From: Tubulanus polymorphus | Taxonomy: Eukaryota; Animalia; Nemertea | Reading direction: 5' to 3' | Assembly: GCF_964204645.1 (NCBI RefSeq) | Contig: NC_134032.1 | Location: forward strand, 6,870,275-6,934,274 | DNA length: 64,000 nt | The notes under the pieces: model-generated | Seen by the model: the letters and a program-made list of their open reading frames with translations, nothing else | What the model was told of the DNA's origin: nothing | Databases searched by the model: none | Position numbers and translations under genes: made by a program | Shown here: positions 10,988 to 53,412 of the stretch, piece after piece | Layout of the letters: every line of letters starts with the position of its first letter | Position numbering within the stretch: the first letter of the stretch is position 1

Positions 10988-11004
10988 TTTTTTTCACTGT
11001 ATAA

Positions 11005-16986: not shown

Positions 16987-17125
16987 TGTTAATTGTAATA
17001 GATAACATCATGAATAGCGCCACTGCACAGGTATACGTGAACTATACGCACGAAGTGAAGGATAAATAAACGACTAAATTACGGCTAATAAGATATTCTT
17101 ATTCAATCAGACAGACCTTAGGTTG

Positions 17126-17272
<147 letters not shown>

Positions 17273-17328
17273 TAAATTTCTTCTCATTAAGGAATTGCGG
17301 AAAGCACAATTTTGAATGCATTTGCCAA

Positions 17329-19845: not shown

Positions 19846-20251
19846 TTAAGAAACAAAATCATAGATAGGAGTGGACTAGAGGCTTTTGTAATAGTATCTT
19901 TATTCGAGTGCCTGGATGAATTTGCGTGTGTCTATACTCAAAGAAAGGATCATAAAAGTTTTTATTAGCAATGATAATTAAGTATCCTCCTCCGTGACAG
20001 GTATTCGAACCTGATGGTAGCACAAGCTTCTGCTGCATTAGAGCCTTGTGAGGCTTTCGGATTCGAATCTCTACTAGGGAGGTTCAGGCTTTGATTGTCT
20101 CATATACTGTTTTAATTACCATACTTATTTTCTACAGTTAGAAATAATTTTACAATCGCATTACACAGGTAGTCAGTACAATGGCGGTTACCAGCATAGG
20201 TCATATGCAAGATTACGACCTTCTTGGTACGCCAAAATACAAATATTGAAC

Positions 20252-21614: not shown

Positions 21615-22262
21615 AAAAGTATTAAATGGTGTATTTCTAAGAGAGTAATTGCAGGTATGGAATTAACCATTACAGATCCCGGATGTCGTACCAGTTATTC
21701 TGGTCGTCCTGGACGCCTGTTTTATTACCTCACAAAAATACACACAATTTAAACTTTCATTCTACTCATCAAAATCAATAGCTAGAAAGTATTAAATGAC
21801 ATATTTTAAAGGAGTAATTGCAGGTATGGAATTAACCATTACAGATCCCGGATGTCGTACCAGTTATTCTGGTCGTCCTGGACGCCTGTTTTATTACCTC
21901 ACAAAAATACACACAATTTAAACTTTCATTCTACTCATCAAAATCAATAGCTAGAAAGTATTAAATGACATATTTTAATGGAGTAATTGCAGGTATGGAA
22001 TTAACCATTACAGATCCCGGATGTCGTACCAGTTATTCTGGTCGTCCTGGACGCCTGTTTTATTACCTCACAAAAATACTCACAATTTAAACTTTCATTC
22101 TACTCATCAAAATCAATAGCTTGAAAGTATTAAATGACATATTTTAAGGGAGTAATTGCAGATATGGAATTAACCATTACAGATCCCGGATGTCGTACCA
22201 GTTATTCTGGTCGTCCTGGACGCCTGTTTTATTACTTCACAAAAATACACACAATTTAAACT
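21615..22262 (+). repeat. 169-bp tandem repeat, 4 copies, containing a ~70-bp conserved core
   Basis: GCAG(G/A)TATGG starts at 21651, 21820, 21989 and 22158. Confidence 0.95.
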
Positions 22263-24055: not shown

Positions 24056-26117
24056 CTGCATTCATTTAGCAACTGACGTTTTGGTCCCTTTTAGGTTCTG
24101 GACGGCAGAATATCTTAATTTTTTGAGGAGAAAACTGCATTCATTTTGCAACACCCAGTTATAAGGTTCTGGATGGCAGAATATCTTGATTTTTTTTGAG
24201 GAGAAAACTGCATTCATTTAGCAACTCCCAGTTATAAGGTTCTGGATGGCAGAATATCTTAATTTTTTTGAGGAGAAAACTGCATTCATTTAGCAACTCC
24301 CAGTTATATGGTTCTGGATGGCAGAATATCTTAAATTTTTATAGGAGAAAACTGCATTCATTTAGCAACTCCCAGTTATATGGTTCTGGGTGGCAGAATA
24401 TCTTAAATTTTTTAGGAGAAAACTGCATTCATTTAGCAACTCTCAGTTATATGGTTCTGGATGGCAGAATGTCTTAAATTTTTTTAGGAGAAAACTGCAT
24501 TCATTTAGCGACTCCCAGTTATAAGGCTCTGGACGGCAGAATATCTTAATTTTTTTAGGAGAAAACTGAACTCATTTAGCAACTCCCAGTTATAAGGTTC
24601 TGGATGGCAGAATATCTTAATTTTTTTTTAGGAGAAAAGTGAGCTCATTTAGCAACTCCCAGTTATAAGGTTCTGGATGGCAGAATATCTTATTTTTTTT
24701 GAGGAGAAAAGTGAGCTCATTTAGCAACTCCCAGTTATAAGGCTCTGGACGGCAGAATATCTAAATTTTTTTTAAGGAGAACACTGAATTCATTTATCAA
24801 CTCCCAGTTACAAGGTTCTGGATGGCAGAATATCTTAATTTTTTTTTAGGAGAAAAGTGAGCTCATTTAGCAACTCCCAGTTATAAGGTTCTGGATGGCA
24901 GAATATCTTAATTTTTTTTTAGGAGAAAACTGCATTCATTTAGCAACTGCCAATTATAAGGTTCTGGACGGCAGAATATCTTAATTTTTTTTTTTGAGGA
25001 GAAAAGTGAGCTCATTTAGCAACTCCCAGTTATAAGGTTCTGGATGGCAGAATATCTTAATTTTTTTTAGGAGAAAACTGAATTTCGTTTAATTTGAATA
25101 AAAGGTTTCCCTTAGGAATCGGCAGCAATTTCACTTATCTTATTTCACCACTTTCCAAAATTTTGTATACGTTTGCAATGAACCGCAACCAGGATCTGAA
25201 CCTGAAAGAATGGTACTATATGATGATTAATCAAACTCTTTGAATCCGACCCTGAAATAAAACTAACAATCAATACCTCATAAGTGAATGCAATAGCTGC
25301 CAGAGCTACATTTCCAAGGATAACTGCATTCATTTAGCAACTGACGTTTTGGTCCATTTTAGGTTCTGGACAGCAGAATATCTTAATTTTTTGTGGAGAA
25401 AACTGAATTCATTTAGCAACTCCCAGTTGTAAGGTTCTGGATGGCAGAATATCTTGATTTTTTTTAGGAGAAAACTGCATTCATGTAGCAACTCCCAGTT
25501 ATAAGGTTCTGGATGGCAGAATATCTTGATTTTTTTTAGGAGAAAACTGCATTCATTTAGCAACTCCCAGTTATAAGGTTCTGGATGGCAGAATATCTTG
25601 ATTATTTTTAGGAGAAAACTGCATTCATTTAGCTACTCCCAATTATAAGGCTCTGGACGGCAGAATATCTTGATTTTTTTAAGGAGAAAACTGCATTCAT
25701 TTAGCGATCCCAGTTATAAGGTTCTGGATGGCAGAATATCTTGATTTTTTTAAAGTAAAAAACTGCATTCATTTAGCAACTCCCAGTTATAAGGTTCTGG
25801 ACGGCAGACTATCTTAATTTTTTTAAGGAGAAAACAGCATTCATTTAGCTACTCCCAATTATAAGGCTCTGGACGGCAGAATATCTTAATTTTTTTAAGG
25901 AGAAAACTGCATTCATTTAGAAACTCCCAGTTATAAGGTTCTGGATGGCAGAATATCTTAATTTGTTTTTAGGAGAAAACTGCTTTCATTTAGCAACTCC
26001 CAGTTATAAGGTTCTGGACGGCAGAATATCTTGATTTTTTTTAAGGAGAAAACTGCATTCATTTAGCGATCCCAGTTATAAGGTTCTGGACGGCAGAATG
26101 TCTTGATTTTTTGAGGA
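24056..26117. repeat. ~61-bp satellite, roughly 30 monomers in two blocks
   Basis: Unit AGGAGAAAACTGCATTCATTTAGCAACTCCCAGTTATAAGGTTCTGGATGGCAGAATATCTTAAT(T)n; blocks at about 24056-25081 and 25324-26117, each preceded by the same ~240-bp non-satellite segment (1268-bp offset). Confidence 0.97.
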
Positions 26118-26622
26118 GCGCGTGTATAGGCCAATTAAATCAATCCATTATCGTACAGGTTGACTAACACTGACAACTTCAGATACAAATAGCAATAAAC
26201 TTGAAGATATAAGATAAAAAGCAAATCTTATATTCAACAAATTCGATAATATAGGCCGACGTCAAGTTTATTTAAGTTTTAGTTTAAGAATCTAATTATG
26301 AATATTGAGGGTCAAACTAAGTTCTTGGGATTGGATTTACTGAATAGGTCTGGTGACATCATTTTCATGTCCATTATGATTTTCTAATCTTTTCCTTATG
26401 CCATTCATTCATTGAAAATAAACCTTTTGAGCAACCCCCTTTCTTGATGTAGTATAATAGTGAATGCAATTATATTTTAGATTGAGTGACAAATTTGTAG
26501 GCCTAAAAACAACAGTTAGATAGAGTAATAAAATTCAGATTTCAATCTATATTTATGGCAAAATTAGTTTGACCCTCATAATTATATAGAAACCTATTAT
26601 GATTAGCTGATTACTCAAAAAT

Positions 26623-27780
26623 CAAGGCGTCAAGGACGACCAGCGTAAATGGTACGACATCCGGGATCTGAAATGGTTTATTCCATACCTTGAAAAAGTA
26701 ATGATACCTAACACTTCCAAAAATCAAACAGCACTCCTCCAGTAAATCAAGGCGTCCAGGACGACCAGTGTAGCTGGTACGACATCCGGGATCTGAAATG
26801 GTTTATTCCATACCTTGAAAAATAATACCTTACTCACTATTCCAATACTAGAAGTCAACTCCAACAAGGGTATGAGGATCAATCACTGGCTAAGATAACT
26901 TTGTTAGTCATGCTTTCTTAGAATGTCAATATAACCATGGGAACCAGAAGAAAAAAGTTTATTAATAGGTCATTGATCAATAAATAGATTACATTACAAA
27001 ATGTATAGGCAACTCAGTTGACCTGCACTTGATCTAAAACATTGAAACAAAATGTGTTGTCCTGTTGAAATTGTTGTGAATTCTGTTTTATCTGACCTGC
27101 TGCCTATATCTTTTAGTTTGCTCATCCTACAAAAATAAAACAAGATGCAATTTCCTACCATCTATAATTTGAGTAAATTTAAATCACTTGAGAAGCTTCT
27201 TAGCCACCACATCGTAAAAAGGCCTGTAGATTTATGTAAATAATTCAATCCATCGAAAAGAATTTCAAATTTGATTTTCTAGACCTACCTGTTGACAAAA
27301 TGACAAATTATGTTTTTAAAAATAATTCAAAGCAAAAGATTTGATTTCGTGGAATTTATCTTTTTTTAAATATGCAAAACCAATTCGAAGCAATTTTCGT
27401 AATTTAAACTTAGAACGGAGAGATAGGCTTAAGATTAGTTGACCGAACACCCACCTTCCTTGGCTTGGCTTTAAAAACTTTGTACCCTCTCAATAGGCCT
27501 AATGAATAGACCTGTCGTAGAAAATATTTGATTAAAAAAAAATCGAGGCGTCCAGGACGACCAGTGTAAATGGTACGACATCCGGGATCTGAAATGGTTT
27601 ATTCCATACCTTGAAAAAGTAATGATACCTAACAATTCCAAAAGTCAAACAGCGCCCCTCATTTTTAATCAAGGCGTCCAGGACGACCAGTGTAAATGGT
27701 ACGACATCCGGGATCTGAAATGGTTTATTCCATACCTTGAAAGAGTAATGATACCTATAACAATTCCAAAAGTCAAACAG
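26623..27780 (-). repeat. Four inverted copies (two 125-bp-period pairs) of the ~70-bp core of the 169-bp repeat
   Basis: AGGCGTC(C/A)AGGACGACCAG-N5-(A/C)TGGTACGACATCCGGGATCTGAAATGGTTTATTCCATACCTT at about 26623, 26748, 27545 and 27670. Confidence 0.93.
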
Positions 27781-33245: not shown

Positions 33246-35415
33246 ACTGATGCAGGGGTTCGTGCCGTGGCTGAGTGTAGCGATGCCATCAGGTTCGAGT
33301 CCCTGCAGAGGGAGGATGAAAGACCTGTCACACATGTCACACAGTCAGGGCTGGACTGAGAATTCAACACTGGCCCTACTCCATTTCGTAGCACAGTCCT
33401 CGGTGATACTTAATGCGACCCAGTAGGCAGTGGATTTGTAAAGTTTTGATTGAATTGAGTTTGTAAGGTCCTTCATTCGTTATGCGCTTTACTTGTGCCG
33501 GGTGACTACAAATCAGTCGATGAGCACATGATACAGCAAAGTACTTGCCAAAAATAACTGCTGCGCCCAAATAAAAAAATGAATGACAAATTACCACAAC
33601 TTACCCGTACATTACTTGTAGCGTCTTGAATGCTTCCTAGGGCCCCTACACCTTCATCCGCCGCCATGTTGGATCGCGATTGCTAATTTCCGATTAATAC
33701 CGCCATTATACGGTTGCTTGGCCGCATCTGACGGAGCGTTACCGTTTCTAAACGCCTTCTCCCGATTCCTCGCAAGGAACGCCGTTTATTTGCGGTTTTA
33801 GACCTATTTCTACTGTTTTGTTCCGTATTTAATCGATCCGCGAAAAAATGACATGCCAATTTGCGGAGCAAAACGTTTGTCGACGGATTATGCCGTAGCA
33901 AATCGGATCACTATTGGCCGATTTCAGACGTCGGTAAATGAGCGGTTGTTAAAATCGGTTTTTTAGCGGTTAATTCGTGATAAAACGTCGGAAAATGAGC
34001 GGTTTAGCCGTCGGTAAATCGTCGAAATATTGCATCGTTTACCGACGTTTTATCGTCATTTTTACCATCTTTAATTCGTCGGAAGTTCGTCGATAAATTT
34101 TGCGACGAAAAACCGACGATTAACCGCGGCTGGTGGCGCCACGGTTATGACGTCATGAATATGACGTCATTGAGCCTCGAAGTAGAAAATCGATCTACCA
34201 GCGACCTCATCGAACCTAAGCGCGCGAGTTCATTGGAAAAACCAGAAATAAGTTTTACTCACACACGCAGCGCATCGTTCTTTTATCTGTTTTATGATGC
34301 AATATCATTGGTGATGTTAGGTGACATTACTGCTATCCGGAATCCTGTTATCCGGTACAATACTTCGTTCATGGATGAGATATTGAAGATCCACTTTTCC
34401 AGACTAGTTTCGCGGTTTCTTTCATTCCTTGCTTGCTAGGCCCAAAGTAGTAGGCCCAAAGCTGAAAAAGTTGTAATGTTTAGTGCTGCCGTTGGCGTTG
34501 TGGGTGTAGTTAGTAGGCGGACCTACGTGCTGAAGTAAGTATTTAGCTTTTTTAAATCTTGCAACTGAACATAAAGCAGGCCTAAACTTTTTTTCGAGTT
34601 ATAGAACTTTTCGATCAATGCAAAGCAGCGTTACTTAGGCATATTGATTTTTAATTTTATCATGGACACTTGATCAATTCAGTGCATAGTATTAGGCCTA
34701 AAACGTAAGAGATTCTACTGCCAGTCTTTAATCTAGTATGACCTGTTAACATTAACACCAGAATACTAGGCCTAGATTTGGGGCATCTGAGTATATGCAG
34801 CTCACTGCTCTGTTTAGGTCATATCTTATTTCATTTAGTTGAGAGCATTCTATTATAAAATGAAACTCATCTTCAATGGCATTGCAGTGTTGGCACAGTC
34901 TATTCTCTCTCATCTTCCTCGCTCTATCAGGAGACGATGATTACTTATCCTAAATTTACATGTTGGTTCTAAACAGTTTTGGTAGTATAGGATCCATTAA
35001 GAATGGCGTCATGGTAAATTCAGGATTTAGATTTTTGGAGCAGTCTAGTTTTGGGGAATTTGATATCCATTTGTGCCAAAAAATTTCTCTCTTGTAGTGT
35101 AATTTAGCTCGGGTAAAAGATTTAAAATTAGATGGATTCTCTATCAGTTCAGAATGGTTAAGGATCAGGTAAGTGATCAGGTCTATTCACACAAGTGTCA
35201 TGCATTGATATCTAGGTGTAATCTTTGTAAGCACATAAGGCATTTTGTTAGATGTTGTAGATTTAGGAATATGTGAATAGATAATAAATGCTCCTCTTAA
35301 AAAACAAATAAACATGATATCCTGAAATCACTGATAAAAATCCATTGATTTTCGATCATTACCAAATTAACTTGAATATAAATGATTAAATAAAACATGA
35401 TTGAATATTATTTTA

Positions 35416-36448
35416 TTAAGTTAAATTATAATTATTATCGACGAGAACCGACAATCCTTTGCGCCATGTTGGTTTAATCAGTTGACCCAGATTTGTGATC
35501 TTTGTTAATATGACCAATTTTTTGCCGTCTAGAAAATGTAAATAATTATACAATGGCATAAATGACTTACATGGGCTTAGAATAAACCAATTTAATTTCA
35601 TTGGTCTACTGCACTGATGAAATTACCTTCTTTTTCTTCTTTTAGATACCCTTCAAAAAAAAGGTGCCCATCTATCGATTTGATTGCTTGTATGGCTATA
35701 TTCTTCGTTTTCTTAGATTTCCTATACCGATATGTAATTGTTGTAGGTCCTATTGGCATGTTTAAACTAAATTCCATAAATCAATCCCTTATCAAAATTT
35801 ACCTCGCTTTTGTATCTCTCTGGTTTTTGAGATAACTTTTCACCTCTTTCAAAATAATGACGGGGCTGATGTCAACAGCGTGAGCTTTTAGTTGAGTTTC
35901 AATCTGTAAAAATGAAGAATTTATCAGAAATATATTGTCACTTATTGAAAAATCGAAACTCAGCATAGTAAGGCAGAGTATATAGGCCTATTGTTAAAGT
36001 TTCATTTCTTTACCTCATTCGTTGCTTTCGCAACATCTCCATTATTTAGTAATATGCATGTTTTTACCAGGTCCTACAATTAAAGATTAATTGTTTTATT
36101 TGTTGAAAAAGATACCTATATTGATTTAACCTAACAAAACCATTAGCCTACTCTAAACATTCTCCGTTCTTTTGTCATCTTCGTTCCTTTTTGCTTCCTC
36201 ACTTTCGTTAACATTAATTCAGCTGAATATAAATGTATGTTATTACATGATTATATTGAAATTATAATTACATTGCTTTGTATAGTTTTTAGAAGATTTT
36301 GACAAGTTTAATAGCTTTTGAATTACCTTTGTTTATCAAGCTCCATTCTGAAATTGAAAAAAATGTTATTAATAATTAATAAGATGAACTAAAAATGATT
36401 AGAATTTAAGATATTTATGATACCTTCTTCGGTCATTTGAAATTCCAT
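35416..36448 (-). CDS. CACTA-1 accessory gene, 7 exons, ~160 aa, unknown function
   Basis: Manual GT-AG assembly gives an open frame MEFQMTEEEWSLINKAELMLTK...WRKGLSVLVDNNYNLT*; homologous exon by exon to 45722-46932. Confidence 0.8.
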
Positions 36449-36880
36449 TTTGACTTTTTGTGTCGCTATAGCAGACGCTTGATTATTGGTCACAAGATGG
36501 CAGCACTTATCGGTGGCATTTATTTTGCAGAATAAAATCTTAAAATTGGTATTGGACTTTGAAAAGCTACTAAAAGTTTTCAAAGTTAGCAACAACTGAA
36601 TAGAAATGGGATGCCGATTTAGAAAACAAGAAAAGTTGGCAAGGAATTTCTTCAAGGTTTGAATTATGAAGTTTATTGTATATACATGAAATGATTGTAT
36701 GAACATTGTCGAATACTATACTGTATATCCTTGAAATAATTTAAAATACGCGCGGGGTGCATCTCTCCGTTCTGGTTGTTTTGTTAGTGGTAGACGTAGT
36801 AGTACTATTGATCAATACTACTATACTACTCCTATGCCATAAATTCAATAAATCTTATATCAATGTCAATGCCCAAATTT

Positions 36881-39800
36881 TATAGCCTTCCTTGGCTATC
36901 ATCAGCTGACATTTCCTTTAATGTTCGATTGGAATAACGCAAGGTGGATATGTCGCCTCTCGAACATCGGTCCACCAGAAACCAGTTTCCTCGTCCAGTC
37001 GCGGCCTGCTGAGGCAGGTGATTAAGGCCAATTCCTTTTAAAATGAATAAATATGTAAAATTGTTTTTTCTTTAATAGAATACATCAATGTTTTATAGAA
37101 TGTTAGATGGAAATGGAAGGGAACGCGTACCTGCTCTTGGCACCTGAAGAGACCATCTATCTTCGATATGTACGTATAGCGTATATCATTTTCATCGAAT
37201 ACTACTTCGTTTCTACGATATTGATGTTCATCTTCACGAAATTCTACTTGCACATATGAGCTGCATGATTTGCTTCCTATATTTTCTTCGTAACTGAAAT
37301 ATTTTTCCTTAGATCAATAATATAACTAAATTACAGTTTTTAAGTAGTTGTTTTAAAATGCTTAATTACCTTGCAGTTCTAAAATGGTATAACATCTCAA
37401 TATCGTGATCTGGTATGGTGGCCATATTAAAAGCTTCGATGGCCTCGATATTATTTTCACTGTAATAAAAAGCTATAAAGTTATATCTTATTAATGCAGT
37501 TACTTTTTTCAAATTTAAGGGCTACCCTAATTTTCAAATTTTAGGATTTTTAGATTTGTATTTTTAAATTTCTCTAATATCTACCCTTCGAAGTATTCCA
37601 TTATTGCTTGTCGTATCTGATTTTCTGGGATGACTAAAGTCGATTTCCCATGAAGATAATCCTGTATATTCCTCGCTCTATAATCTCTATAGGTGATGTT
37701 TGCTTGCATCTGTTGTTGATGTTGTATTTCCTGGTTAAGAATATATGCAAATACAAACATTAGGCCTAACATGCTAAGATTAGTGTGTTGACATCTAATC
37801 CATTACTTACATTAGGTAATAGTAATTGAAGCGGTAAAGGCAGATTTTCATTTCCCATATGTCTTGCGGAATTGTATAGAAGAATTGCCTAGAGAAATAT
37901 ATCATCCTTTACTGTCATTTACTGTAATCATTTTTCTGGCTTGAAAATATTTACAAACATTTATCTGAACAAATACCCTGTGTTTTTTTATGAGACTTTT
38001 CTCAACTTTCATATTTGCTGTATTGATTGATTTTAGACGATGAATTGTGGATTCCATTGGAAACATGTCTACGGCGTGGGCTGTTCCAAAACTTCTGATG
38101 GTATGAATAATGTGGTGATGTAGGTGAAAATGAGCTGTTAACAGAGAAGCAGGTAGACATTTTTCCATCTCTACTAAAGTTGAACTAAGTTCTACTGCAA
38201 TTGTATCCCATTCCGCATTTGTATTTGATGCATATATCTCTGAAAAGTTAAGAACAAATCTTTTTTGTACAACAGTCGATTCACTGTACTCGTTTACCAG
38301 CAATTATTATTTATACCTACTTTCAATGATTTTACAGTATTTGAAGATGGTCGACCTCTGCGAGTTACCCAGCATCCCTCTGAGACAATAAATAAATGGA
38401 CCATTTTTAGCTGCCTGTGGAAGGAAAAAGGGAAATTGATAGATTGTTGAGCATTTCAAAAACCAATTCCTAAGTCAGCATGGTGTCCCTAGACCCCTAG
38501 TTAAAATCATGATCAAGCTAATCGTAGCAGACCTGGCAGTTATCAAATTGTAACGAATACTTCTTCAAGCAAATTTAAACAGTTAACATCATTGTATGAA
38601 GGCATCTTTTACCTCGATGTAATCATACGATTTTGTTTGACTAGTTTCTGTGAAGATGTTGTTGTTCTGTCGATGGGAACATCCTAGTGGCGCTTTTATG
38701 CCGTCCCATCTCTCTTGAATGATATTCTTTTCCCTGACAGTTAAGTTCCAATTAGTCAGTGGGATGTCTTCGTCTATTAACTGAATTGAATATGAGTGTA
38801 TAGATCAATAGAATACATCATATTTTGAAATTTAAAAAAAAAGTGTCAGTTAACCTTTTAATTTGATGATTTTTGCAGAATCTTGGGAGGCTGATGCGTA
38901 CTCCATGTAATTAAAAAACAGGCCTTAGATATACAAACCCAACATTGTTCATTCCTTCCAATTATTTCTTCATACTGACGTACACGAGCACCATCTCTCA
39001 CTTCCGTTTTATTCAGTATTTCTATGAGTTTTTTTAGTAAGCCACTTATCGTATGCATTGGGTCGATTACGATATCAGTGAAGGTGTTGAATTCTTGTAT
39101 ATTAAACAGTATCGATTTATCCCTGAGGCCATTCTCTTGTATCACAATTCCTAAAATGTCAACACAGAACTATGATCAATCTACATGCGTATTATATTTT
39201 GCTCATTTTGTAAATTGCAATATACATTTAATTGGTAATCAGTTGATTTCTATAGTCAGGTCTGTTATGGTTAGCATGATTAGGATTTTTTTGTGGATAC
39301 AGTAGAATCCTTTTGATTCGGGTCAATTGGGATCAACAAAATTCATGTGGTTTACCATCATTTATTCTATTGGCGCTCCTGAGCAGTAGATCATGTGATT
39401 TGGAATCAAATGGTTGGCGATTTTCAACGTCATTTGTTGTTGAGATACCATTGTCGTTCAAAAATGGTCCTGGTCTACGATTAGGATGGTCATTAGGTAA
39501 ATATCTGAAATGTGGGTGTACATATCAGGGGCCGGTTGCTCAAAGGTTGGTTACGATAACCGGTTGATAAGTTACCGGTTGATAAGTTCTTAACTAACAG
39601 TTAATCTTGAGCAACCAGCCCCTGACATTTATCTTCGAGGCCATTTAATTCATATGAAAATATGTATGTATTTGAGAACTTATTCTTGCCTTCGATTTTG
39701 ATGGTAAATCATACGATTCAATGGTTGGGGTCGTATTGCTGGATGAATACATTTTATACATCCATTATATCCTGCTGCTGTTTGATGGTTTAAGGTCAAA

Positions 39801-42357
39801 CAGTGGCTTTCGTAGTCACCTTTCATCATTATCAGTTTACCCTAGAAACAGTGATTCATATACCAGAATTATCTAAAATATTGACCGATTAGAATGTGGC
39901 GAATCTTTGAATTGGGACCCCAAGCTATCGTGACAAGTCCCTGTAGGGCTATTGCGTTTACTTTTCATCTGTTGGGGAACTTACCTTTAATTGAAAGATC
40001 TCCCCATTTCTCCCGTCGATAGCGTCGATGCCATTGTTAAGACGATTTAATTCGGCCACAAGAGGTTCAAGAAAACCATTGATTGATCGTTTGTTTTTGG
40101 ATGGTATGATGCCGTATACGAAAGTATTTTCGTACAATTTGCTTTCCGATAGCCTGAAATTTGAAAAATATTGAGAAATGAATTACACACTCTGAACGAG
40201 AATAGTTCATTACTAGATCTATGAAACTTCGCAACTCCTAATTTAATCCACTTTGAACTTATATATATATTCACCTTAGATTCAGGAAATTGATCAAAAT
40301 TGGCCATATAGAATGTTTTTTCTTATGGAAGACATTTGTCCCATCTAGAGTCAAGGAGAGGGATATTCCTCGTCTATCTCCGACAAAAAAACCATTTTCA
40401 GAATACAATTCTGTCCATTTTTCTGTTTCATGAAGATTGAATATTCTGAAAGGTGATAAGAAAAAGAAATCTCACATATTAACATTAAGTAATGAAATTA
40501 CAGCTTAAATTAGGCTTCACTTCCTATTGACCTTTCGCCATCATTTTGTCGTGCATACTGCGTCGCTCTTTCTCCCATATTGAAATATCTGAACTGCCCT
40601 GCAATTCAATTTACGTAGCTAGATTAGAAACATAGTAAATTCAATAGGCTATTGTGTAGCTATACACAATAAAATCCCTGCTCAATGCTCAATAGCGATC
40701 TCATTTTTAGCATACCTTTTAGATAAGGGATCAAAGGCATCCATGTAAAATCAACGGTTTCCTCTGAACCGCATTTTTGACAATTTTGTCTGTCTCTATT
40801 TTCATACCAATACATCGTGCATCCGTTTACACAAACTTTCTCTTTGCGAAATTTACCAAATATTTGCCTCTCTATGGTTTCAAGCTGTTTCACTGTTGTT
40901 GGCGTAATGTTTGGTTGCGGTAAGATGTGATGAATAAAATACAGTAATTTATTCATTGCAGTTTTTGACATTTTCTGTCCTTTTGCGTGAAAAGAAGATA
41001 CCATTCCGACAAACTGTATTAATTTTACATCGGAACCTTCGTAAATCATTTGTTCAAATCTTTCATGCTGTCCATAATCCCCTTCATCATTATCACCATC
41101 TTCTACATCATCCCAATCATCACCGTCGTCTCCATCTCCACCATCATCACCGTCATCTCCATCTCCACCATCATCACCGTCATCTCCACCATCATCACCG
41201 TCGTCTCCATCTCCACCATCATCTCCACCATCACCGTCCTCTCCATCTCCACCATCATCTCCATCATCACCGTCCTCTCCATCTCCGCCATCATCTCCAT
41301 CATCACCGTCATCACTGGCATGATCACCATCTCCACCATCATCATTTACATTATCGTCATTGTATCCGTCATAATTCTTGTTGTGCTGATCTTCGTGAAT
41401 CTGTTCAAGAATGATAAGCTTAATGCTTCATAAATAATCAAAAATTCATATACATGTAGTCTTTATATAGTTTTGATATGATTACATACTACAGCATTTG
41501 TACCCCCCCCCCTGCCACTAATGATATGACGCAATATCAGGGTTCTTTTGATTGAATTCATAATATATTGAGTTTTGAGGTCATTGGTTTCAGTGGTATA
41601 CGGAAAAAATGTCCCCAGAAAAAATGTCCCAGTCTATCATTACTAACTTGGTAAATGTAGTTAATTTCACATCATAATAACACCAGAAAACAAACTTGGT
41701 ATTATATTTTAATTAAAATTTTAACATTTGATAACAAATAATGGCTCTACTTTGCGATTAATTATTTGTATTATAAATTTAGAATCTTACATTTGACTTA
41801 TTATTTGAAGTAACTGTGCATTCACTTAATAACTTTTCATAATTTTCTCCATTAATGATATGTAATTAAGTAACTGCACATTCAATTCAATAGTAAAATC
41901 TCCTTAAATTTGAAACTAGGGAGCGTTGAATATTGAATTGTTAGATTGTTGAGCATTTTTAACCACATCCCAAGTGGGTATGATGTCTCTGGTTTCCTAG
42001 ACCTAACTCAGTTTCGTTTTACGTGCATTAAAATGTTAGATAAATGAACTATGTATTTACTTGAAGGTCTGCAATATTACATGTAGTTGAATTTTCAGAA
42101 CTCTCATTGTACTCGCATGTCACGTCTAACTGTAATGTGCAATACATAATTTAAGTTATATCATATCATAACTCCTAAAGTCCAGAGAACTACAGTCAGA
42201 AATGCTAAGAAAATGTTCTCGCATCAATACATACCTTTACATTCTTGATTCGTGCTTCCTGGTCATCGAACATGTACTTTCGCTTATGTCTATACCGGGT
42301 GACACGATTGACATATTTTCCTTTGCACTTCTGGCACGGGCAATAAACCGTCGACAT
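36881..42357 (-). CDS. CACTA-1 TnpD-like (Transposase_21) DDE transposase, multi-exon
   Basis: Exons MSTVYCPCQKC; D/G-rich tract; KVCVNGC..CQKCG; LSLTLDGTN..SIWP; FLEPLVAEL; GDYES..GCIKC; IDPMH; HLHHHI..FG..DMFPMES; short GT-AG introns. The exons I checked are in frame; not all were checked. Confidence 0.85.
39528..39622. mobile_element. Small PIF/Harbinger-like MITE in a transposase intron
   Basis: GGGGCCGGTTGCTCAA ... TTGAGCAACCAGCCCC TIRs; flanks TCA/TGA. Confidence 0.65.
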
Positions 42358-42755
42358 TGCTAAATTGAAAAAGAAATTATGAATACTCTGTGTCCACTGA
42401 TTTTGTTAATTTTTGGCGAACCGTAGGTTTGCCTATGCAAACGGTCTTGTGAAACAGTTTTCATTGAAAATGAATAGAGTACCGGTGTGTCAACAAGGCA
42501 TAAACATTGGCCATTGAATCAATAGTGTTGATTTTTGGTGTCATGGTTTAGCTTAATGAGTTCTCGAGCCCACAAAAAATTCATTGTGATCGAGTTATTT
42601 TTAAGGGACTTATTCTTGAAAAACACGTAAAAACCCTGCTTTTTAGCACTAAGTAATGTCACGTTTTTACGTATGACAATTATATATAACGAGAGAAATC
42701 CCACAATAAGTAGTGCCAAAACGAGAAACTTGAATAGAAGAGTTATATATATTTG

Positions 42756-42795
42756 CGCAACGTTTCGGCTAAAGACTATTAGCCATCATCAGGCG
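42756..42795 (-). ncRNA. Minimal type I hammerhead ribozyme (Penelope-like element type)
   Basis: Minus strand CGC-CTGATGA-T-GGCTAA-tagtct-TTAGCC-GAA-ACGT-T-GCG: CUGANGA and GAAA cores, stem II, 3-bp stem I, palindromic ACGT stem III and GUU cleavage triplet. Confidence 0.75.
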
Positions 42796-43223
42796 TTCTC
42801 AGTACTCGTCTCAACAATCGCCTTTTTTTATGAACCGTGGTGCTCTACTCTATATTCAATTTTCAGGTTCGAATCCCTGCTGCAGAGGGAGGATGTGTTA
42901 GATGGCGAACACCGGGGGAGATGCATCTAACAGTAAAGTATACGCAGCCTCTCAGAATGGCACTGGGGGCTGATGCATAGTTTACAAGGTTCAGTTACCT
43001 GAACTGAACGTTCGTCAGAAATAAAGAGTAAGACAAGAAAGAAACGATTGAGAGTTTCATGTGTACGTGTACATTCAATTTAGAACTTTATTTTTGACGT
43101 GGAAATATTAAACATCAATACATATCAATACATATAAGTTATTTTATTTACACAAACTCGAGAAATCGTAGAATATGGTCAGTAGTAGACCATTTTGGTC
43201 TAAATCCGGCTTGTGATTCACTA

Positions 43224-43723
43224 CTGTCTGTCACACCTACTCTCCGTGCGACGTTTTGGTCCGTAATTTCGTTAATAATCGGTTTATCTACCTTTATTAT
43301 GCATCAATTTGTTCAGTGAGGAATTTGCATTCAGAAATAAACAACAATTTTCACTTAATTGGTTTTTGTTTTCATTTATGAGCGATAGTTTACTCAGCAT
43401 ACGCTCGCGTAATGCTGAAAAATCCGCTCCGCGGACGCTCGGAAACGTTACAGTGACGTCATCACCTGCTCATTAGCATATCAAAATAAAGTAGGTGGCG
43501 CCACGTGACGGGCCATAAAAGCCGTTTTTCAGCATTACGCGAGCGTATGCTAGGTAAACTATCGCTGATAGAAGAAAACACAAACAAATTTCTGCCAGTT
43601 CATGATTTATTTCTGAATGCAAATTCCTTACTGAACAAATTGATGCATAATATTTACAGATCAACCGATTATTAACGAAATTACGGACCAAAACGTCGCA
43701 CGAAGAGCATGTGTGACAGACAG
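43224..43723. mobile_element. Palindromic MITE with TA TSD (Tc1/mariner-type)
   Basis: TA|CTGTCTGTCACAC ... GTGTGACAGACAG|TA, with inverted arms of about 200 bp. Confidence 0.8.
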
Positions 43724-45721
43724 TAGTTATATTGTTTGTAGATTTGGGAATAAACACAGGTCGTGGTCACGGACGGACGTATTTTCGGCACGCTCCGGTA
43801 CAGCGCGATTAACGATATCGATGTGAAGCAACGAGGTTAGTTAGAAACTTTTGTAAGACGATATAGTTTGTAGAGCCTCTGTTGGTGCTGCCATCTATAA
43901 TTTAGTTTCGAAATTATTGTATCCGAAATTTCGCTTATCTTAACAAAAAGATATGTATACAGTAATAAATCAGCGTCGGGAGTTTGTCGTCGTTATTTTG
44001 TTAATCGTTTGGAGGTTATGAAATTTGCTCTTCGTATCGCGCTTTTGTTTTATCGCATCCACCACACCTTCGACGCCGTTTTCACTCATGTGCACTCACG
44101 CACACCGATCAGTTTGGTCTGTAAATAAATCATTTAAAGAAAACATTACTCACGTTACTCTTCGTGTTTGTTTCTATATTTCTTTTGTCTAAGAGGAGAT
44201 ATTTGTAGGACTTATGGTTGAAAATCGTGATTGGAAATGGAATTTGAACATTATTATATAACTACGTGTACTGTTGCTACCATGGTGATAAAAACCGACG
44301 ATCTTCCGACGATTTCAATTCTGTCGGAAAATCGTCGTTAATCCTATCCGTCGTTAATTAGTCTGTAAATAACCGCTAGATAACCGACGATATTAATCTG
44401 ACAATTTACCGCTTAATTTCCGTCGATTTACCGACATTTAATCTACCAAATAACCGCTCATTTACCGCAAGGGCCAATAGTGGATTTTGACCAAATTTCA
44501 AGTGAAAGGGCCGATTTTTCAGGAATAGACCGCATATGCACGGGAAAATCAGCGTGAAATTTCGGTTATGGCCGAACAGTTTTTTACAGTGTAGGCATCA
44601 GACCACAATTAGGTTAGTAGCTCGAAGATGCGTAGGGCCGGACCCCAAAAATAGTACCTAAAGTGAACGGGTCCCCCATAAATGTTGCCATAATTTCTGC
44701 AAATGGGATAGGTACACTATTGGCCGATTTTGGCCGTCGGTAAATGAGCGGTTCTCTTAATCGGTTATTGAGCGGTTTTCCGGTGGTAAATCGTCGGTAA
44801 ATGAGTGATTTTGTTGTCGGAAAATTGTCGGAAAACTGTCCACCTTTCCGACAATTAACCGACGCTTCACGGAGTCGAAAGATCGTCGGTTATTCGTCGA
44901 TAAGCGCAACCGTCATATTTCCGACAGTTTTCGACGCTCCACATCGGTGACGTCATTAAATAGATTTCTACCGGGTAACGCTCCTTTCGCACCCGGAACT
45001 ACGTTACTGCGTGGTGAACTAGGTCATCGCGTATATACACACACCAGTTCGACTTAATACACGGATTTTCATTAGACACATACGCAAGGCTCATGAGCTC
45101 GTTTTTACTGCAATAACAGCTGCTCTTCAACAGTTCAAGGCATTAATATTCAATAAATTTCTCCGCGTTTGGTAAGTACCGGCATGAAATATTTGTTTTG
45201 TGAATGTTTCATGTCACTAGGCTATGTAAGTTTTTTTGCTGGCGGATTTTTTAGCCGTTAGCCGAGCGTACTACGTGCACGACGTAGTCGTAGAGTTCAT
45301 CAGTTAGAGGCCTATGATGGCCTAGTTTTATCGTGGTGGATCCACTACGTAGAAAATGATACTATGACCTGATGACTGGTAGATTATATGTATGGTGACC
45401 TCAGGCCAAGTTGACCATTTGTTGGCATGGGCATGGAATATGCTTTATTACTGCTTTGCTCAAGTACTGCTAGGCAAATAGTTTTTTTTCGAATTTTTTT
45501 TTCAATCCCCCGACACGTGTTACTCAAACTGTCAATGTATTGGAAAACCCAAAAGACGTCACTTTGTAGTGATGAGAAATGATTTGGAAATAGCTACATA
45601 CACCCAAAGAAGCTAAAAGGTAAGCATAACTTCAATAAATATAACATTTTATATTTAATCATTCAAAAGTATAAAATTATGAATTTAATAACGAAACAAG
45701 TATACTAGTAGGTATTTGAAA

Positions 45722-46932
45722 TTAATTTAATAATAATTTGAAATTGTTTGTAACGATAACTGTAACGCCTTTTTTCCATTTGGGTCGTATCAATTTGCCA
45801 AGATTTGTCATACATTTTATAACCACCAGATAGTTTCCATCTGAATAGAAATGTGACATTTCAGTTATAGAGTCTTTTTTTTATAAGATGTTTTGTGCAA
45901 AAATAATAAAGCTTACCTTCTTTCTGTTTTTTCAATACGCATTGCCCAATTACATTATCCTCCGGGCAAGTTATGTCGAAAGTCTTTTCTGTTGATTGTT
46001 GTTGCTTCTTCTTTCTAAGATTATTGAAATTAGAAGAAAATGATATATCGTATATGTTCCCGGAGATGACTTTTGATGTGCATTCATCTGGGAAGATACT
46101 TAACTCAGTGATGAATACATCTTAGTGAAATTAAATTTTTTTAAAGCCAATGCTGTTTTTTTTTTAATGATTGAAGTTCTATACAAATTTAGACTACCGT
46201 AATGACGTAAACTATATTTTATAGCCAACATCCTTTTCTTGTAATTTGCTCTTATCTGTGTATTGTATTCAACTTAGCTTCTTCAAACCTGTACATACCT
46301 TGCTTCTGTATCTCTTCTGTTCTTCTTATACGATTTTATTTCTTTATTGATAGTATTTAGACTCATATGAGTGCCAATTTTATTCAATTCTTCTTGTATC
46401 TGCAAAGTAGAATTTCATTCTCTGCTGTAGTGAAAATAAGGATTCTTTATAAATTGCACAAGCAATTTGATAACAATGTATCATTTTCGTCGCTTTCATC
46501 AAGTTTTGTTCAATATTACACACCACTTTTACTAAATCCTAGAGATAAAAAACTACTTTCATTTTTATATTTTCATCAGTAGTAGAATGAGGATTTGAGA
46601 TTAAAATTTTAATCTAACTTTTTACCCTTAATAGTTTTCTTTCTGCCGTCATTGTTGTACCTTTTTCTTTCTTTTTCTTTGTCATCATTAATTCTCCTAC
46701 AGATACGAATAATTTATTATTAAGTTTCCAATTATTATTTATTTTCATACAACTTGAATATACTCAAATACATCTTGTTCAGTTGCTACCTTTGTTTATC
46801 AGGCTCCAATCTGCAAGAAAGAGAAAGCAATTAAAGATTTAACAAAATTTAGTCATGAATTATTGAATATCGATCTCATAAAATTATATGAACGATACCT
46901 TGGTCTGTTAGTCCTATGTCTGCCAATGCCAT
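45722..46932 (-). CDS. CACTA-2 accessory gene, 7 exons, ~165 aa (exon-4 donor appears mutated GT to AT)
   Basis: MALADIGLTDQDWSLINKGELMMTK...TNLGKLIRPKWKKGVTVIVTNNFKLLLN*; same intron phases as 35416-36448. Confidence 0.75.
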
Positions 46933-48053
46933 ATTTTTGTAAAAGTTGTATTTTCCTTGAAAAATAATAGCCTACACTGAAAATTGAATGTTTTGGATCT
47001 CTCATTTCTTATCTTTATTGTGTTTTGTTAAGAAATGCCTTTAAAGGCATTTCTTAACAAAACACAATAATCATAAGAAATGTAGGCCCCTATAAGAAAT
47101 GTATAAGAATTGTATAAGAAACTAAATAGTTTATTTTTACAGAAACAAACGTACCTGGAATTGCAATGTGTCAAATTTGTCTGAGCAGAAGACAATTGCT
47201 TGTAGGTGGCAGCACCTTTCAGCATATATTTTTCAAAAGTCAAATGTTCAAGAACGATTTTTTTATGATCAACAAATTGTTTTTAATTCATTATCTTCTA
47301 TGTTCTATTTTATATTGTTATAAAATCAAATTAAATTCAGATAAAATATAGTAAAGCGATCTAGCTTTTTAGGTAGCATTAGCGGTACATGAAAATCGTA
47401 ACAGCACTCGTCAGCAGCATGCAGTCTGAAGTGAAGTTGGAAGCTACAACCAATCTGTATTCTCAGCCACGTTCGTTCATCTAAAACCCAAAGGTAAGTT
47501 ATCAAATATGATGTTTCAAGGGGCCCATGGATTTAAAATGTCAGCATGACGTGATCCCGTGTGAAAATATTAATTATCTTTAACGTTAGTTATTTATGTT
47601 ACAACAATCATCAACATCCTAAAACTGAATATAATGCACAAAAAATATAAAGTCATCGATAAAACGGTTTCTTAATCAATATTTGATATCTTGACTGCCA
47701 TTAAAAATTCGGATTGCAATGTTAAAGTTTGGAAATTAAGGGATTATTATAGGAACGTGACTGCCTTGTCGGCTATCTAACTAATATTTTGAAAGCTGAG
47801 CTACTACTAGCGCCATCTATCGGACTCCAATTGAAGCTGTTCATTGTTTGCAAATTTTTGAAATAACTGAAAATAATGAAACTGAAAATAATGGATAATC
47901 GAAAAACCTCAAGTTTTCAGGTGACAGTAAACTGATATCTAACTTAGGCTTTAGACTTTCTATCATGTTATACGAAATCAGAATAGAAAGGAAATGAGAT
48001 GAAGATTTTTTTGTTACATAAAATTTTCATACTTGCCTGTGTATTTGTTATAT

Positions 48054-51000
48054 TTATACCAATGATAAAGCCCATATCCTGGGATATTCTTCTGCCGTGA
48101 TGATTTGGCATTTCAGAAGATGTCGCAAGGGTACTAGACATGGATCGTACATGTCTTCTCTTAAGTCACTCCACCAAAAGCCAGTTTCATTATCAATGTG
48201 TGGCCTGCTTAAGCATGCTATTAATGCTAGTTCCTTTAATTGATAGGTAGGCTACTTATTATTAATTTGGATTAAATCATTATTATTTAATTCAAACCGA
48301 TAAAATTCCAGTACACATACCTCCCCATTGCATTTTATAAATTTCAATATTTTTGAAATGTACGTATATTGGACTTGACCCTCAACAATGACTTCATTTC
48401 TATGCCCTCTGTTTTCAGCTTCTTCAAACTCAATTTGTAAGTACGAACTGCATGTTTTTATTCGGTGATTTTCTTCATAGCTGCCATGTACAAAATTTCA
48501 CAGTGCATGTTAACTTATCAAACCAGATGTAAAAATCTCCGAATCATGGTCTGGTAATACGGCCATGTCGTATACTTCGACTGGACCGAAGTTATTGCTG
48601 AAAAAGGAAGAATTAGCGATACACTTTCATATATAATCAGTCATGACTATTTTGTTAATATTGGTAAAGATTTCTTTTTATTTGTTTGTACCCGTCGAAA
48701 TATTGAATCAAAGCCTCTAAAACTTGATGTGCGGGAAGAATGATTTCGGAATACCCATACAGATTTGAATGTATGTTCCTGTGACAATAATTTCTGTATG
48801 TAGTTGAAGTGGTCATTGGCTGGTGGTCATCAACATGCTCGAAATCCTGTTGATTATAAAAAAGAAAGAAAGAGGTTTCATTTCAAAGGGGATCATTTCT
48901 TTAATACTTATTTTCGATTATGATTTCATGTCATTTGGAATCTTACATTGGGTAGCAGTGATCGAAGCGCATTAGGTAGATCGTCCATATTAAGTAAATG
49001 CCTCGCTGAGTTAAACGTGAGTAGTGCCTGAAATAATTGTCATTATCATTTCATGTCCATATTATCTTGAAATATTGAAAACTGATGGCTCTTACCTTAT
49101 GTTTTTTCATCAAACTCTTTTCAACATTTTGCTTTGCAGTATTCATTTGTTTCAGTTTATGGATGCATGACTCGGAGGAAAACATATGAATGGAATGAGC
49201 CGTGCCAAACTTACTAATCGAGTCAATTATGTGGTGATGAAGGTGACAATGAAGGGTGAGTAAAGACGCAGGGTAAAATTTTTCTATGTCAACCAAGATT
49301 GCAGAAATCTGTGTGGTCAGTTCTTGCCATTCGGCATTTGTATTTGAATTGTAGATATCTGAAATAGAATAGAAAGATAGTCATTTTATATTTTCAAATG
49401 TTACATTTTGTGCCTATGATTGACACTTACTTCCTACTAGTTTACAATACTTGAAGAATGTCCTTCTCTGATGCACTCCAAGCATACCTCGCAAACAGAA
49501 AATTAATGGAGAATGAATTGCACCCTAAAATGAAGATGATAAGTATGAAGACACGGTAATATGTTTTTCTCTTTAAAAAAAAGTAATTCTATTTATTTTA
49601 TTGAATATTTACTTCAATGTAGTCGTACGATTTCATGTTGCTACTAGGATCGAATGGATTTCCCTCTGTTCTGAATGAACATCCTAATGGCGCCTTAATA
49701 CATGCCCATCTCCCTTTCATAAGTTCTTTTTCTTGGGCTGATAGGTTCCATTCAGCTGGTGGCAGATTTTCATCGATGAGCTGAAAAAGAATTAATGAAA
49801 TAAGCTTAAGACTCAAGTGCCATGATTATCTTACAGAATAGCACTATATAAACAAATAAATTATTATCATAAGGGATAATTTATTTATTTTATTTTTATT
49901 TATTTATTTTACCTACGCACTAGGGGAGGGGTAACTGTAAATGCGTACTGTAATGCTTAATGTATATTAAAAAAATGGCTTATTTTGTGTACAAGGGGAG
50001 GGGTTTAAACAGTAAAATTTTATGCAATAAATGAATGATCCCTAATTATTAAAAGGAGCTGAAATTAGTTAATGAAAATTTATTGTAGAAAATGTAATAG
50101 TGCTACAAACCCAACATTGTTCATTTTGCAATAGCATTTCTTCGTACTGTCTTACTCTTGCACCATCTCTCACTTCGTTGCCATTGAATGCTTCGATAAA
50201 TTTCTTTATCATACCACTGATGGTATGCATAGGATCCAATGCAATGATAACATTGACATTTGTTTCATCTAAATCAAACAGAATCGACCGCCCTTTGAAG
50301 CCGAGTTCCTGCCTAACTATTCCTAAGATTTCAAATGAACATATTATAACGCATTTTATAAATTTTTCTTTAAGTTGATGGTAATTCTTGATTGATGTAC
50401 CGTTATTAACTCTGTTTGCACTTCTCAACATAATGCCATGGGTTTTTTCTTCAGGCGGATGTCGTACCTCGATATTTCTAGTCGTTGAATTTCCATCATC
50501 GCTGATTAATGGTGCATCTACTTCAATTCGCTGCACATGATTAACTGGTAAGTATCTGATACGAAAATCAGAAGCAATGTTTCTAAGAATATATCTTAAC
50601 ATACAATTGGTATTCAAATGTAGAATTTTTTCTTGCCTCCGATTCTGATGGTAGATCATTCTATTCAACGGTTGTGGGTGAATACCATGTTGGCAACATT
50701 TTATGCACCCATCAAAGCCAGCTGCTGTCTGATGCATCAATGTCAAACAGTGACTCTCGTAATCACCCCGATCATTAACAACTTGCCCTGATTGATAAAA
50801 TATACTTATGGCGAATGCACTACATTTATTTTTAGAGTACATCTTTTTCAAGTCGAGGATAAATAATTTTGACTGGGGTATTCTGATATGAATTATTTAC
50901 CTTTAATTCGAAGTGTTCAAGATTACGACTTCCGTCTATTGTTGGTACGCCTTGCAATAATTCATTGATTTCAGTAATTAATGGCTCTAAAAAGCCGTTT

Positions 51001-52446
51001 ACGCTTTTTCGTTTGTTCATTTTCATTAATCCATATATGAAAGTATTTTCATATGCCTTCCCTTCTGATGGTCTTAAATTGATAAAACCAGTTCTTATTA
51101 TTCCTCAGACTTCTATCAATTAATATTATGATATGTTGTATATCGGAGACATCAATTTCACTACATGTACCTTAGATTTAAAAAGTTGATCATGATCGGC
51201 CACACTGTATATTTCTTGTGTCTGAATGCGTTAGTGCCGTCCATCGTTAGGGCCAATCCTAGGCATCGCCTATCACCTTGGAACAGTCCATTCTCATAAA
51301 AGAGACGTTGCCATGTTTCCGTTTGATGCAGGTTGAATATTCTATTAAAATAATGTGTAGATATATTTTAGTAAGCTGATGATGACGTCAGTAATAGGGA
51401 TAATAGGCTTTCAGATCAAAGGTCGAAGGGTCGAGTGAGTAAAAAATGAAAATGACTATAATTTACAGTTGAATCTAACTCATACAAATATGAATATTGA
51501 AATAATGTTGTAAATATATCTATATATCTATTATATAAGAGCTTACACTTTTATATTGAATAATGTATCAATTTAAATGTTATTCATTTACATGATTATT
51601 TTAAGAGTAATAGGGATAATAGGCTTTCAGGTTAAAGGTTGAAGGGGCGAGTGAGTAAAAAATGAAAATAACAATAATTAACAGTTGAATTAGGAGTGTG
51701 CGCGACTAATTCAACTGTAAATTATAGTTATTTTCATTTTTTACTCGACCCTTCGACCTTTGATCTGAAAGCCTATTATCCCTATTACTGACGTCATCAC
51801 AACCCCCCATTATGTAGAATAGTAGCTACCTACCTTTCACCATCATTTGGTCTTAAATATTCAGTGACCCTACGCGCCATGTTGAAGTGTTCATATTGTC
51901 CTAGAGAGAGATCAAAGAGATGTATTTTAACACTTCTAAACAGAATCTAGTTTTATTCATACCTAGATAAAATCAAATAATTAACCATTATGCAGATATC
52001 ATGTATCTTAGATGGTTTACCTTTCAGATATGGGATTAGTGGCATCCACGTGAATATAGTAGTCTCAGTAGACCCACATTTGTCACATCGTTCAAGATGG
52101 CGATTGTTCCTCCAAAACATCATACAACCATTTGTACACACTTTTTCGCTACGCATATTCCCGAATATATATTTTTCTAACGTCTCTAGCTGTTTTACAG
52201 AGCGTGGTGTTATATTCGGTTGGGGTAAAATGTGGTGTATCATATTCAGTGTTCTTGTCATTTCTGTTTTCGATATGCCAGTGGTTGCTCTCGCATATAG
52301 TGATGTAACAATGCCGATATACTGTATGAGATTGATATCCGAACCTTCATAAATAGGTTGTTGAAAAATCTCGTGGTCACCATAGTTACCTACATCAGCC
52401 TCTCCATCGTCATCACCACCATCATCCCCTCCATCACCATCATCCT

Positions 52447-52488
<42 letters not shown>

Positions 52489-53060
52489 CTCCATCATCAT
52501 CATCATCACCATCATCGTCCCCTTCTTCATCATCACCATTATCATCACCATCATCATCCCGTCCATCTCCCTCATCTGCTCCATCTCCAATTGCTCCATC
52601 TTCATCATTCGCTCCATCTTCATCCTCTCTATAATCATCTCCATCACCATCCCCTCCATCATCTTCAAATCTTCTATTGTTATTTCCACCATCGTATTCG
52701 GCATGATTTCCTGCACCTTCAACTGTATTTTCGATGATACCACATTCCACGCTAATCTATGTAAATAAGCATGATTTATAAAGCAATAACTTATTACTCT
52801 ACATAACATTTAGCCAGATGAAAAGGATATTTGTGGGCGAGTTGGTAAGTAAATTTATTTCGAGGTCATTAATGAGGTAGTAAATGGTTTTGCTAAATTT
52901 TATTATTATTATTTGAGTCCCAGCCATTAGGACTTGCCTTTAATTCTTTTGTACTTTCGTTAATTAGAACATCTTCAAATTTTCTCTTGTGCCTTTTCCG
53001 GGTTCTGCGGCACACCATATTGCCATGACATTTTGCACAAAAGCAGATCACCTTTGACAT
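48054..53060 (-). CDS. CACTA-2 TnpD-like transposase, multi-exon
   Basis: MSKVICFCAKC; poly-D/G tract; KVCTNGC..CDKCG; LALTMDGTN..TVWP; FLEPLITEI; GDYES..GCIKC; LDPMH; HLHHHI..FG..HMFSSES. Confidence 0.85.
51380..51799. mobile_element. Palindromic MITE-like insertion in a transposase intron
   Basis: TGATGACGTCAGTAATAGGGATAATAGGC... arm of about 95 bp, inverted at 51709-51799; extra direct partial copy at 51607-51690. Confidence 0.7.
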
Positions 53061-53412
53061 TGCAACTGAAACTATATACAATTTTAAAACTAGAATATAT
53101 TGAATATTCTTGAATGGGCTTTTGGTTGATCGCATCTACCCCGTACGTAGTTCCTTTTCGTGGGTTGAAATATTTTTTGTTTGCATTTTAAGATGGACTG
53201 GAACAAAACAAAATGATTTGAAATTCGTTTTTTATTTGATTATTTTCAACTTTGATGAAAACCTCGATGGGCTGCTGAAGAAAATAAAAACTGAAAATTG
53301 TATCCTGAACAGTTAATTGCGTGGGTTATCAGATAGATGGCGTATGGGGTAGAGACGTTCTTGGGAAAGTTGAGGCTTTTCAAAATCGACGCAGCTGGTT
53401 TTTCCTATGTTA

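Follow-up and report, generated by a model that had tools for sequence, protein, structure and literature searches.

Do the CACTA transposons of animals carry a second gene beside the transposase gene, and if so, what might its product do? Plant CACTA elements carry a second protein, ORF2 or TnpA (PMC4158355), and it is just in plants that such proteins have been well studied. The single case described in animals is SmTRC1, a CACTA element of Schistosoma mansoni, in which short spliced transcripts encode non-transposase proteins from 3′ exons (DeMarco et al. 2006; PMC1636069). These second products (the SmTRC-PrA ORF is 681 bp long and PrA2 has 299 aa) are non-conserved and were proposed to be a fast-evolving analogue of TnpA (PMC1636069); no sequence shared with plant TnpA, or with the elements of other animals, can be detected in them. 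Here we analyse a 64,000-nt stretch of the genome of the palaeonemertean ribbon worm Tubulanus polymorphus (hereafter the window), which offers a compact, intact example in two families; the ends and repeats are defined, a gene model exists and candidate promoters can be named. These elements allow a direct test of whether animal CACTA transposases need a partner and of what that partner targets.

The first of the two host elements, CACTA-1, is full-length (33909-44482, 10,574 bp), is read from the minus strand and has the features by which CACTA/EnSpm elements are recognised. An 11-bp terminal inverted repeat (TIR), CACTATTGGCC, is found at 33909-33919 and as its reverse complement at 44472-44482, such that the termini open with CACTA and close with TAGTG. 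The element is flanked by a 3-bp target duplication, GAT (33906-33908 and 44483-44485), has short subterminal repeats at both ends and encodes a Transposase_21 (tnp2) domain. The subterminal repeats are matches to CGTCGGWAAAT, at 33929-34118 in the 3′ (left) end and at 44295-44463 in the 5′ (right) end, the latter mostly inverted relative to the former. Allowing up to one mismatch, the window contains 15 such matches against 1.8 expected, all of them inside element ends; the shorter CCGACG occurs 19 times against 5.6 expected.

The transposase gene of CACTA-1 is divided into many exons on the minus strand (36853-41480, the 5′ limit being approximate). When its exons were compared with Pfam one by one, two matched Transposase_21 (PF02992; E=1e-5 and 3.4e-4), each below the whole-protein cut-off, an exon being a mere piece of the domain. 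DUF4218 was also matched (E=1.5e-6, 28.5 bits against a cut-off of 27). A premature TAA at 36920-36918 ends the frame 22 codons short of the corresponding end in CACTA-2, and the codons downstream of it are still conserved. This otherwise complete copy may thus encode a slightly shortened transposase and, because of the premature stop, may be non-autonomous.

The second element, CACTA-2, belongs to a diverged family (44715-54975, minus strand). Its left TIR is the same as the left terminus of CACTA-1; no right terminus was seen in the window, where its subterminal repeats reach approximately 54942. The coding blocks of the two elements are collinear and all lie on the minus strand. In both, the Transposase_21 gene is followed on its strand by a small gene, approximately 1-2.5 kb inside the 3′ end of the element, with approximately 400 nt (CACTA-1) or 1,100 nt (CACTA-2) between the transposase stop and the small-gene ATG. 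The two small genes in the window are referred to below as c1 and c2.

The c1 gene (36448-35416, minus strand) has seven exons of 25, 21, 71, 60, 101, 95 and 113 nt, giving 486 nt, or 161 codons plus a stop. Exon 1 (36424-36448) opens with the ATG at 36448 and is followed by a 21-nt microexon (36327-36347) that is 90% identical in nucleotide sequence to its c2 counterpart. Exon 3 (36152-36222) encodes a basic stretch, exon 5 (35803-35903) gives a tblastn match between c1 and c2, and exon 7 (35416-35528) holds the stop codon and is the most conserved of all; exons 4 (36014-36073) and 6 (35627-35721) complete the model. All six introns are GT-AG, 76-110 nt long, with phases 1,1,0,0,2,1. The exon peptides tile the RefSeq protein XP_074657140.1 (P0001, 161 aa), leaving only the four split-codon residues between peptides, and the hand-spliced model is therefore the RefSeq protein. 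Likewise, the exon peptides of a second copy of the CACTA-2 family, C9, tile XP_074658033.1 (P0002, 166 aa) save for split-codon residues. Both records are labelled "uncharacterized protein". An earlier note on this DNA had claimed a hidden seven-exon gene of about 160 aa. The seven-exon structure is confirmed on sequence grounds as a genuine, spliced gene; as for "hidden", the gene model was already in RefSeq, and what the public record lacked is its connection with a transposon. A number of T. polymorphus loci that RefSeq calls "uncharacterized protein" are thereby relabelled as transposon genes.

The c2 gene (45722-46932, minus strand) is likewise made of seven exons (46932-46899, 46810-46790, 46696-46626, 46538-46482, 46399-46299, 46014-45917 and 45840-45722), and it shares with c1 the intron phases and a microexon of 21 nt, just as had been claimed. 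The accompanying claim of GT-AG splicing holds for all six c1 introns and fails at one c2 donor, that after exon 4 (46480-46481, minus strand), which reads AT. The donor is GT in the 98%-identical C9 twin and in a decayed copy on C10, and the AT is therefore a lesion private to the c2 copy of the window. The RefSeq model of this copy, P0005 (174 aa), matches exon 4 extended to 46458, beyond which GC stands, a gain of 24 nt and 8 residues.

We surveyed the 268-Mb T. polymorphus assembly for further copies of the small gene. Those of the c1 type are found on C8 and C46 (99.6%), plus a deletion derivative on C2, and fragments of the c1 group on C6, C10, C21 and C2. Copies of the c2 type are on C8 and C9, with an internally deleted one on C1 and a decayed one on C10. 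On C9 the full CACTA layout is present, including a TIR approximately 1 kb beyond the small-gene stop, and in the C1 copy a transposase exon lies 2 kb upstream of the small gene. Most of the remaining copies are fragments tied to CACTA sequence, the C21 copy being one that could not be tied to an element. Decayed copies contain frameshifts and stops, like dead transposon copies, and intact copies retain all splice sites. Wherever exon 1 is still present (c1, C46, C2, c2, C9 and C10b), its ATG is preserved. No small-gene match was found at the c2-like transposase copies C12, C9b and C6b, which may reflect truncation. In the C46 copy of CACTA-1, which is rearranged, 424 bp are deleted (window 37176-36752) and an inverted duplication connects 34129 with 36685; even so, RefSeq has a small-gene model at that place (P0004).

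Is the protein encoded by these exons maintained? The small proteins of the two families are 45% identical, and tblastn between c1 and c2 recovers exon 7 (E=9e-11) and exon 5 (E=5e-8). The introns of c1 and c2 align at an identity of 0.44-0.56, a level that shuffled sequences also reach (0.49-0.54), in agreement with the earlier description of them as unalignable. Most differences between exons fall at third codon positions. We counted substitutions by the Nei-Gojobori method, summed over exons with split codons left out. Between c1 and C21, which are 70% identical, exons 3-7 (142 codons) give dN 0.20 and dS 1.63, that is a dN/dS of 0.12, and a pN/pS of 0.27 (bootstrap 0.19-0.37). Between c1 and C9, over all exons (151 codons), dN is 0.435 and pN 0.33; dS is saturated and pN/pS is 0.42. 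With values well below 1 both within and between families, the purifying selection that had been proposed for the small gene is clear from the pattern of substitutions.

No relative of the protein was detected outside T. polymorphus. With P0001, P0002 and P0005 as full-length queries, no Pfam family was matched, P0002 giving merely sub-threshold chance rows, and an exon-wise Pfam search returned nothing for nine exons from both families. Transposase_24 (PF03004), the family of plant TnpA, was unmatched up to E 10 by P0001, P0002 or single exons. No PDB sequence matched (E at least 0.14), and the ESM atlas offered no usable neighbour. A profile of exon 7, built from five copies and searched against 1.84 billion representative proteins, had only two real matches, P0001 and P0002, both from T. 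polymorphus; a third match was a repeat protein sharing a 9-residue motif and was set aside. Across 5.8 billion proteins, word-seeded searches with the protein and with a five-sequence profile found no relative outside T. polymorphus either. Judged from these searches, this is an undescribed family that is for now restricted to a single species, and the earlier statement that it belongs to no recognised family stands. The wider claim of novelty goes too far, given the public RefSeq model and the animal CACTA precedent of SmTRC1 from 2006.

The protein is basic, with a net charge of +13 (P0001) or +16 (P0002) and clusters of lysine and arginine in exons 3 and 6. Two AlphaFold models, resting on five sequences from the two families (mean pLDDT 66 and 70), agree on an overall layout of an N-terminal helix, a confidently modelled three-helix core (approximately residues 33-97 of P0001, block pLDDT 83-92) and 3-4 C-terminal beta strands. 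When these models were compared with known structures, every match was below the noise level of the tools (no Z above 7.0, no Foldseek E under 0.2). Within that limit, the neighbours of the core were for the most part three-helix DNA-binding domains, among them AlpA (Z 7.0), residues 665-734 of the P-element transposase (Z 6.5), homeodomains (Z ~5.5), capicua HMG-C1, TnsB, StbA and Myb/GARP, all sub-threshold. Superposition of the three helices on HTH- and homeodomain-like folds gave a best Z of 6.1-7.0, below the noise guide for helical models. The tail has sub-threshold neighbours in the MTF2 Tudor domain (Z 5.3), a PWWP domain (Z 5.4), Sm barrels and the TDRD1 Tudor domain (Foldseek probability 0.94). 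No sequence motif of the HTH, homeodomain, Myb, Tudor, PWWP or Sm families was detected in the protein. The protein may thus bind DNA or chromatin, to which the only pointers are the basic composition (+13 to +16) and the sub-threshold fold resemblances.

A further feature shared by the two families is a 12-mer, AGATGGCAGCAC, which is found five times in the window where 0.15 would be expected; four of these matches occupy equivalent places in the two elements. In CACTA-1 it is found at 36495-36506 (plus strand), 47 nt upstream of the small-gene ATG, and at 43885-43896 (minus strand), approximately 600 bp inside the 5′ end and upstream of the transposase gene. In CACTA-2 it is found with one mismatch upstream of the small gene (47204-47215, plus strand) and at 54458-54469 (minus strand), approximately 600 bp inside the 5′ end. 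The fifth match, at 19697-19708, lies outside both elements. In each element, therefore, the motif stands upstream of both genes in opposite orientations, amid otherwise unalignable DNA. The copies C46, C2 and C9 likewise have it ahead of exon 1; in C9 a GT follows it after approximately 55 nt and an AG acceptor precedes the ATG by approximately 50 nt, so a 5′ leader exon and intron are likely in the small gene of the c2 family. Read in gene orientation the 12-mer is GCCATCTT, which we take to resemble a YY1-type initiator. It could be either a protein-binding site or a core-promoter element, probably the latter, and suggests that the small gene may have a promoter of its own, unlike the arrangement in En/Spm.

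What, then, is the small gene for? On balance we favour, with modest confidence, the reading that it encodes the second, TnpA/ORF2-type protein of an autonomous CACTA/EnSpm element and probably binds element DNA. In this scheme the basic protein of 161-166 residues would probably enter the nucleus by means of its lysine/arginine clusters and then bind the DNA of the element, most plausibly at the CGTCGGWAAAT subterminal repeats. Once bound, it would aid assembly of the transposase on the element ends or regulate the element. The gene may be driven by its own promoter, which the 12-mer present in both families would mark. The proposal of the earlier note that the protein may bind the CCGACG-type subterminal repeats is plausible. 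Counting against this reading are the sub-threshold fold matches, the lack of similarity to plant TnpA, the c2-like transposase copies with no small-gene match and the premature stop in the CACTA-1 transposase.

This reading has to be weighed against several others. That no gene exists, and that the frame arose by chance in AT-rich DNA, draws some support from the freedom in splice-site choice that short exons and AT-rich sequence leave. However, the exons agree exactly with independently made public gene models, three lineages keep the splice sites and phases, and the differences follow codon positions; the results already contradict a chance frame, and we give it practically no credence. A real gene might instead be a captured host gene or gene fragment, transduplicated and carried as a passive passenger with no role in transposition. 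Plant CACTA elements are known to capture host sequences, and for the C21 copy no element could be identified in the surrounding sequence. Yet the gene occupies the same position in two families whose proteins have diverged to 45% identity and whose introns are randomised, its dN/dS is well below 1, no copy was placed outside CACTA sequence (the C21 context being unassigned), and 5.8 billion proteins contain no homologue outside T. polymorphus. We consider host capture very improbable.

The exons might also not be a gene of their own and instead belong to the transposase transcript as an alternative 3′ module, comparable to the splicing of tnpA and tnpD in En/Spm, with the ATG of exon 1 incidental. 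They do follow the transposase on its own strand, as in En/Spm and in SmTRC1, for which dicistronic and alternatively spliced forms are known. Four observations make such a module improbable: the transposase frame stops 400-1,100 nt upstream, the ATG is retained in every copy that has exon 1, RefSeq treats the small gene as its own locus, and the 12-mer is conserved just upstream of it. Better placed, although still unlikely, is a regulator, either a repressor of its own element or an anti-silencing factor, for which binding to the subterminal repeats would not be needed. The possible Tudor/PWWP/Sm-like C-terminal barrel would suit binding in chromatin or RNA pathways equally well, an apparently separate promoter motif would permit independent dosage, and maize TnpA also regulates (PMC1636069). 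However, the fold matches are sub-threshold, and the present data do not separate a regulator from a transposition cofactor.

Comparison with known systems is in keeping with a TnpA/ORF2-type role. Like maize En/Spm tnpA, the small gene has many small exons and follows the transposase ORF, both being read from one strand; like plant CACTA elements, CACTA-1 has CACTA TIRs, a 3-bp target duplication and short subterminal repeats, in which CCGAC forms the core. Unlike plant TnpA, with its Transposase_24 domain, the protein shows no sequence similarity to that family, and at 161 aa it contrasts with the much larger TnpA of approximately 620 aa. In maize En/Spm, moreover, tnpA and the transposase belong to a single transcription unit, whereas the T. 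polymorphus gene may have its own promoter. SmTRC-PrA and PrB are another parallel, as short products of an animal CACTA element spliced from exons 3′ of a Transposase_21 ORF, and neither they nor the T. polymorphus protein resemble plant TnpA or proteins of other animals. SmTRC1 differs in its phylum and in product size (a 681-bp ORF and 299 aa, against 161-166 aa), and is here compared by description alone. The similar predicted layout shared with HTH, homeodomain and Myb domains and with Tudor, PWWP and Sm barrels scores below a meaningful level. Taken together, the small gene is probably a lineage-restricted analogue of TnpA/ORF2.

Lastly, we describe a pattern within the c1 group for which no tested explanation accounts. 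In the small gene (window 35416-36235), introns 4-6 are more identical than exons in six of six pairs, and the 3′ non-coding DNA, too, is more conserved than the exons. Between c1 and C10a, exons are 75% and introns 94% identical (Fisher p 5e-10), with 3′ non-coding DNA at 88-89%; between c1 and C21 the values are 73% and 84% (Fisher p 2e-4). In a three-taxon comparison, lineage-unique sites make up 10.1% (c1), 10.1% (C10a) and 11.5% (C21) of exon positions, compared with 1.9%, 4.2% and 13.9% of intron positions. The exon changes unique to c1 comprise 9 synonymous and 7 non-synonymous ones, as against 3 changes in 170 intron sites. Two other comparisons lack the pattern: exons and introns of the c2-group small gene behave normally, and in the transposase non-coding DNA is unalignable at 72% coding identity and about as identical as coding DNA at 92-96%.

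Several causes were considered and rejected. CpG decay is at odds with the finding that just 2-4 of the approximately 35 changes per branch are at CpG sites. Base composition (GC 35% in exons, 29% in introns) was likewise set aside, as was an alignment artefact, the level reached by shuffled introns being 47%. A reverse-strand coding sequence is discounted by stops in all three frames of intron 6, as read by eye. This leaves two readings: tighter constraint on the introns than on amino-acid sites, or divergence or exchange confined to the exons. The former fits poorly because the c1 and c2 introns are random with respect to one another, and constraint on all three introns exceeding that on amino-acid sites would be unusual as well. 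In the c1 group, exon divergence exceeds that of introns and 3′ non-coding DNA several-fold, chiefly at synonymous sites, under continued purifying selection on the protein; that a process acting on the spliced message alone lies behind this is improbable. A candidate for such a process would be selection on co-resident transposon lineages to diverge in their mRNA and so evade piRNA/siRNA cross-silencing; another would be exon-only conversion templated by cDNA. If upheld, the pattern would bear on the evolution of transposon lineages under host silencing.

The elements and their surroundings show other features. Two distinct CACTA families stand only 232 bp apart (44483-44714) in the same orientation, which suggests a preferred landing site or a local insertion bias. 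Within the 5′ part of CACTA-1, a 508-bp unit (43220-43727) with 122-nt inverted arms (92%) is preceded by a C at 43219, so that it reads CACTAC, and looks like a nested MITE-like insertion. An interspersed repeat of approximately 75-80 bp occupies ~38786-38867 in the transposase region of CACTA-1; a first look at the genome gave 832 candidates at 91-96% identity, and a genome search with transposase DNA was swamped by this repeat. The N-terminal coding exon of both transposases contains an array of 9-bp repeats (41060-41395 and 52359-52604), which yields a low-complexity tripeptide repeat.

The window is also rich in other transposons, at 1-20000 and 56500-57813. These include a protein-primed polymerase B with an Endonuclease VII fragment (1598-2476), a reverse transcriptase with a tyrosine recombinase (6472-8138), a Helitron-type gene set of OTU, Helitron_like_N and PIF1 (11266-15728), an intact piggyBac-type transposase ORF of 621 aa (17444-19309) and another reverse transcriptase ORF (56500-57813). 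Elsewhere in the window, tandem units of approximately 72 bp form two blocks, and a 169-bp repeat is present three times (24080-26185 and 21635-22262). The arrays are flanked by inverted repeats of 66-85 nt (21653-22244 against 26625-27737), and together they may represent the ends of another large element.
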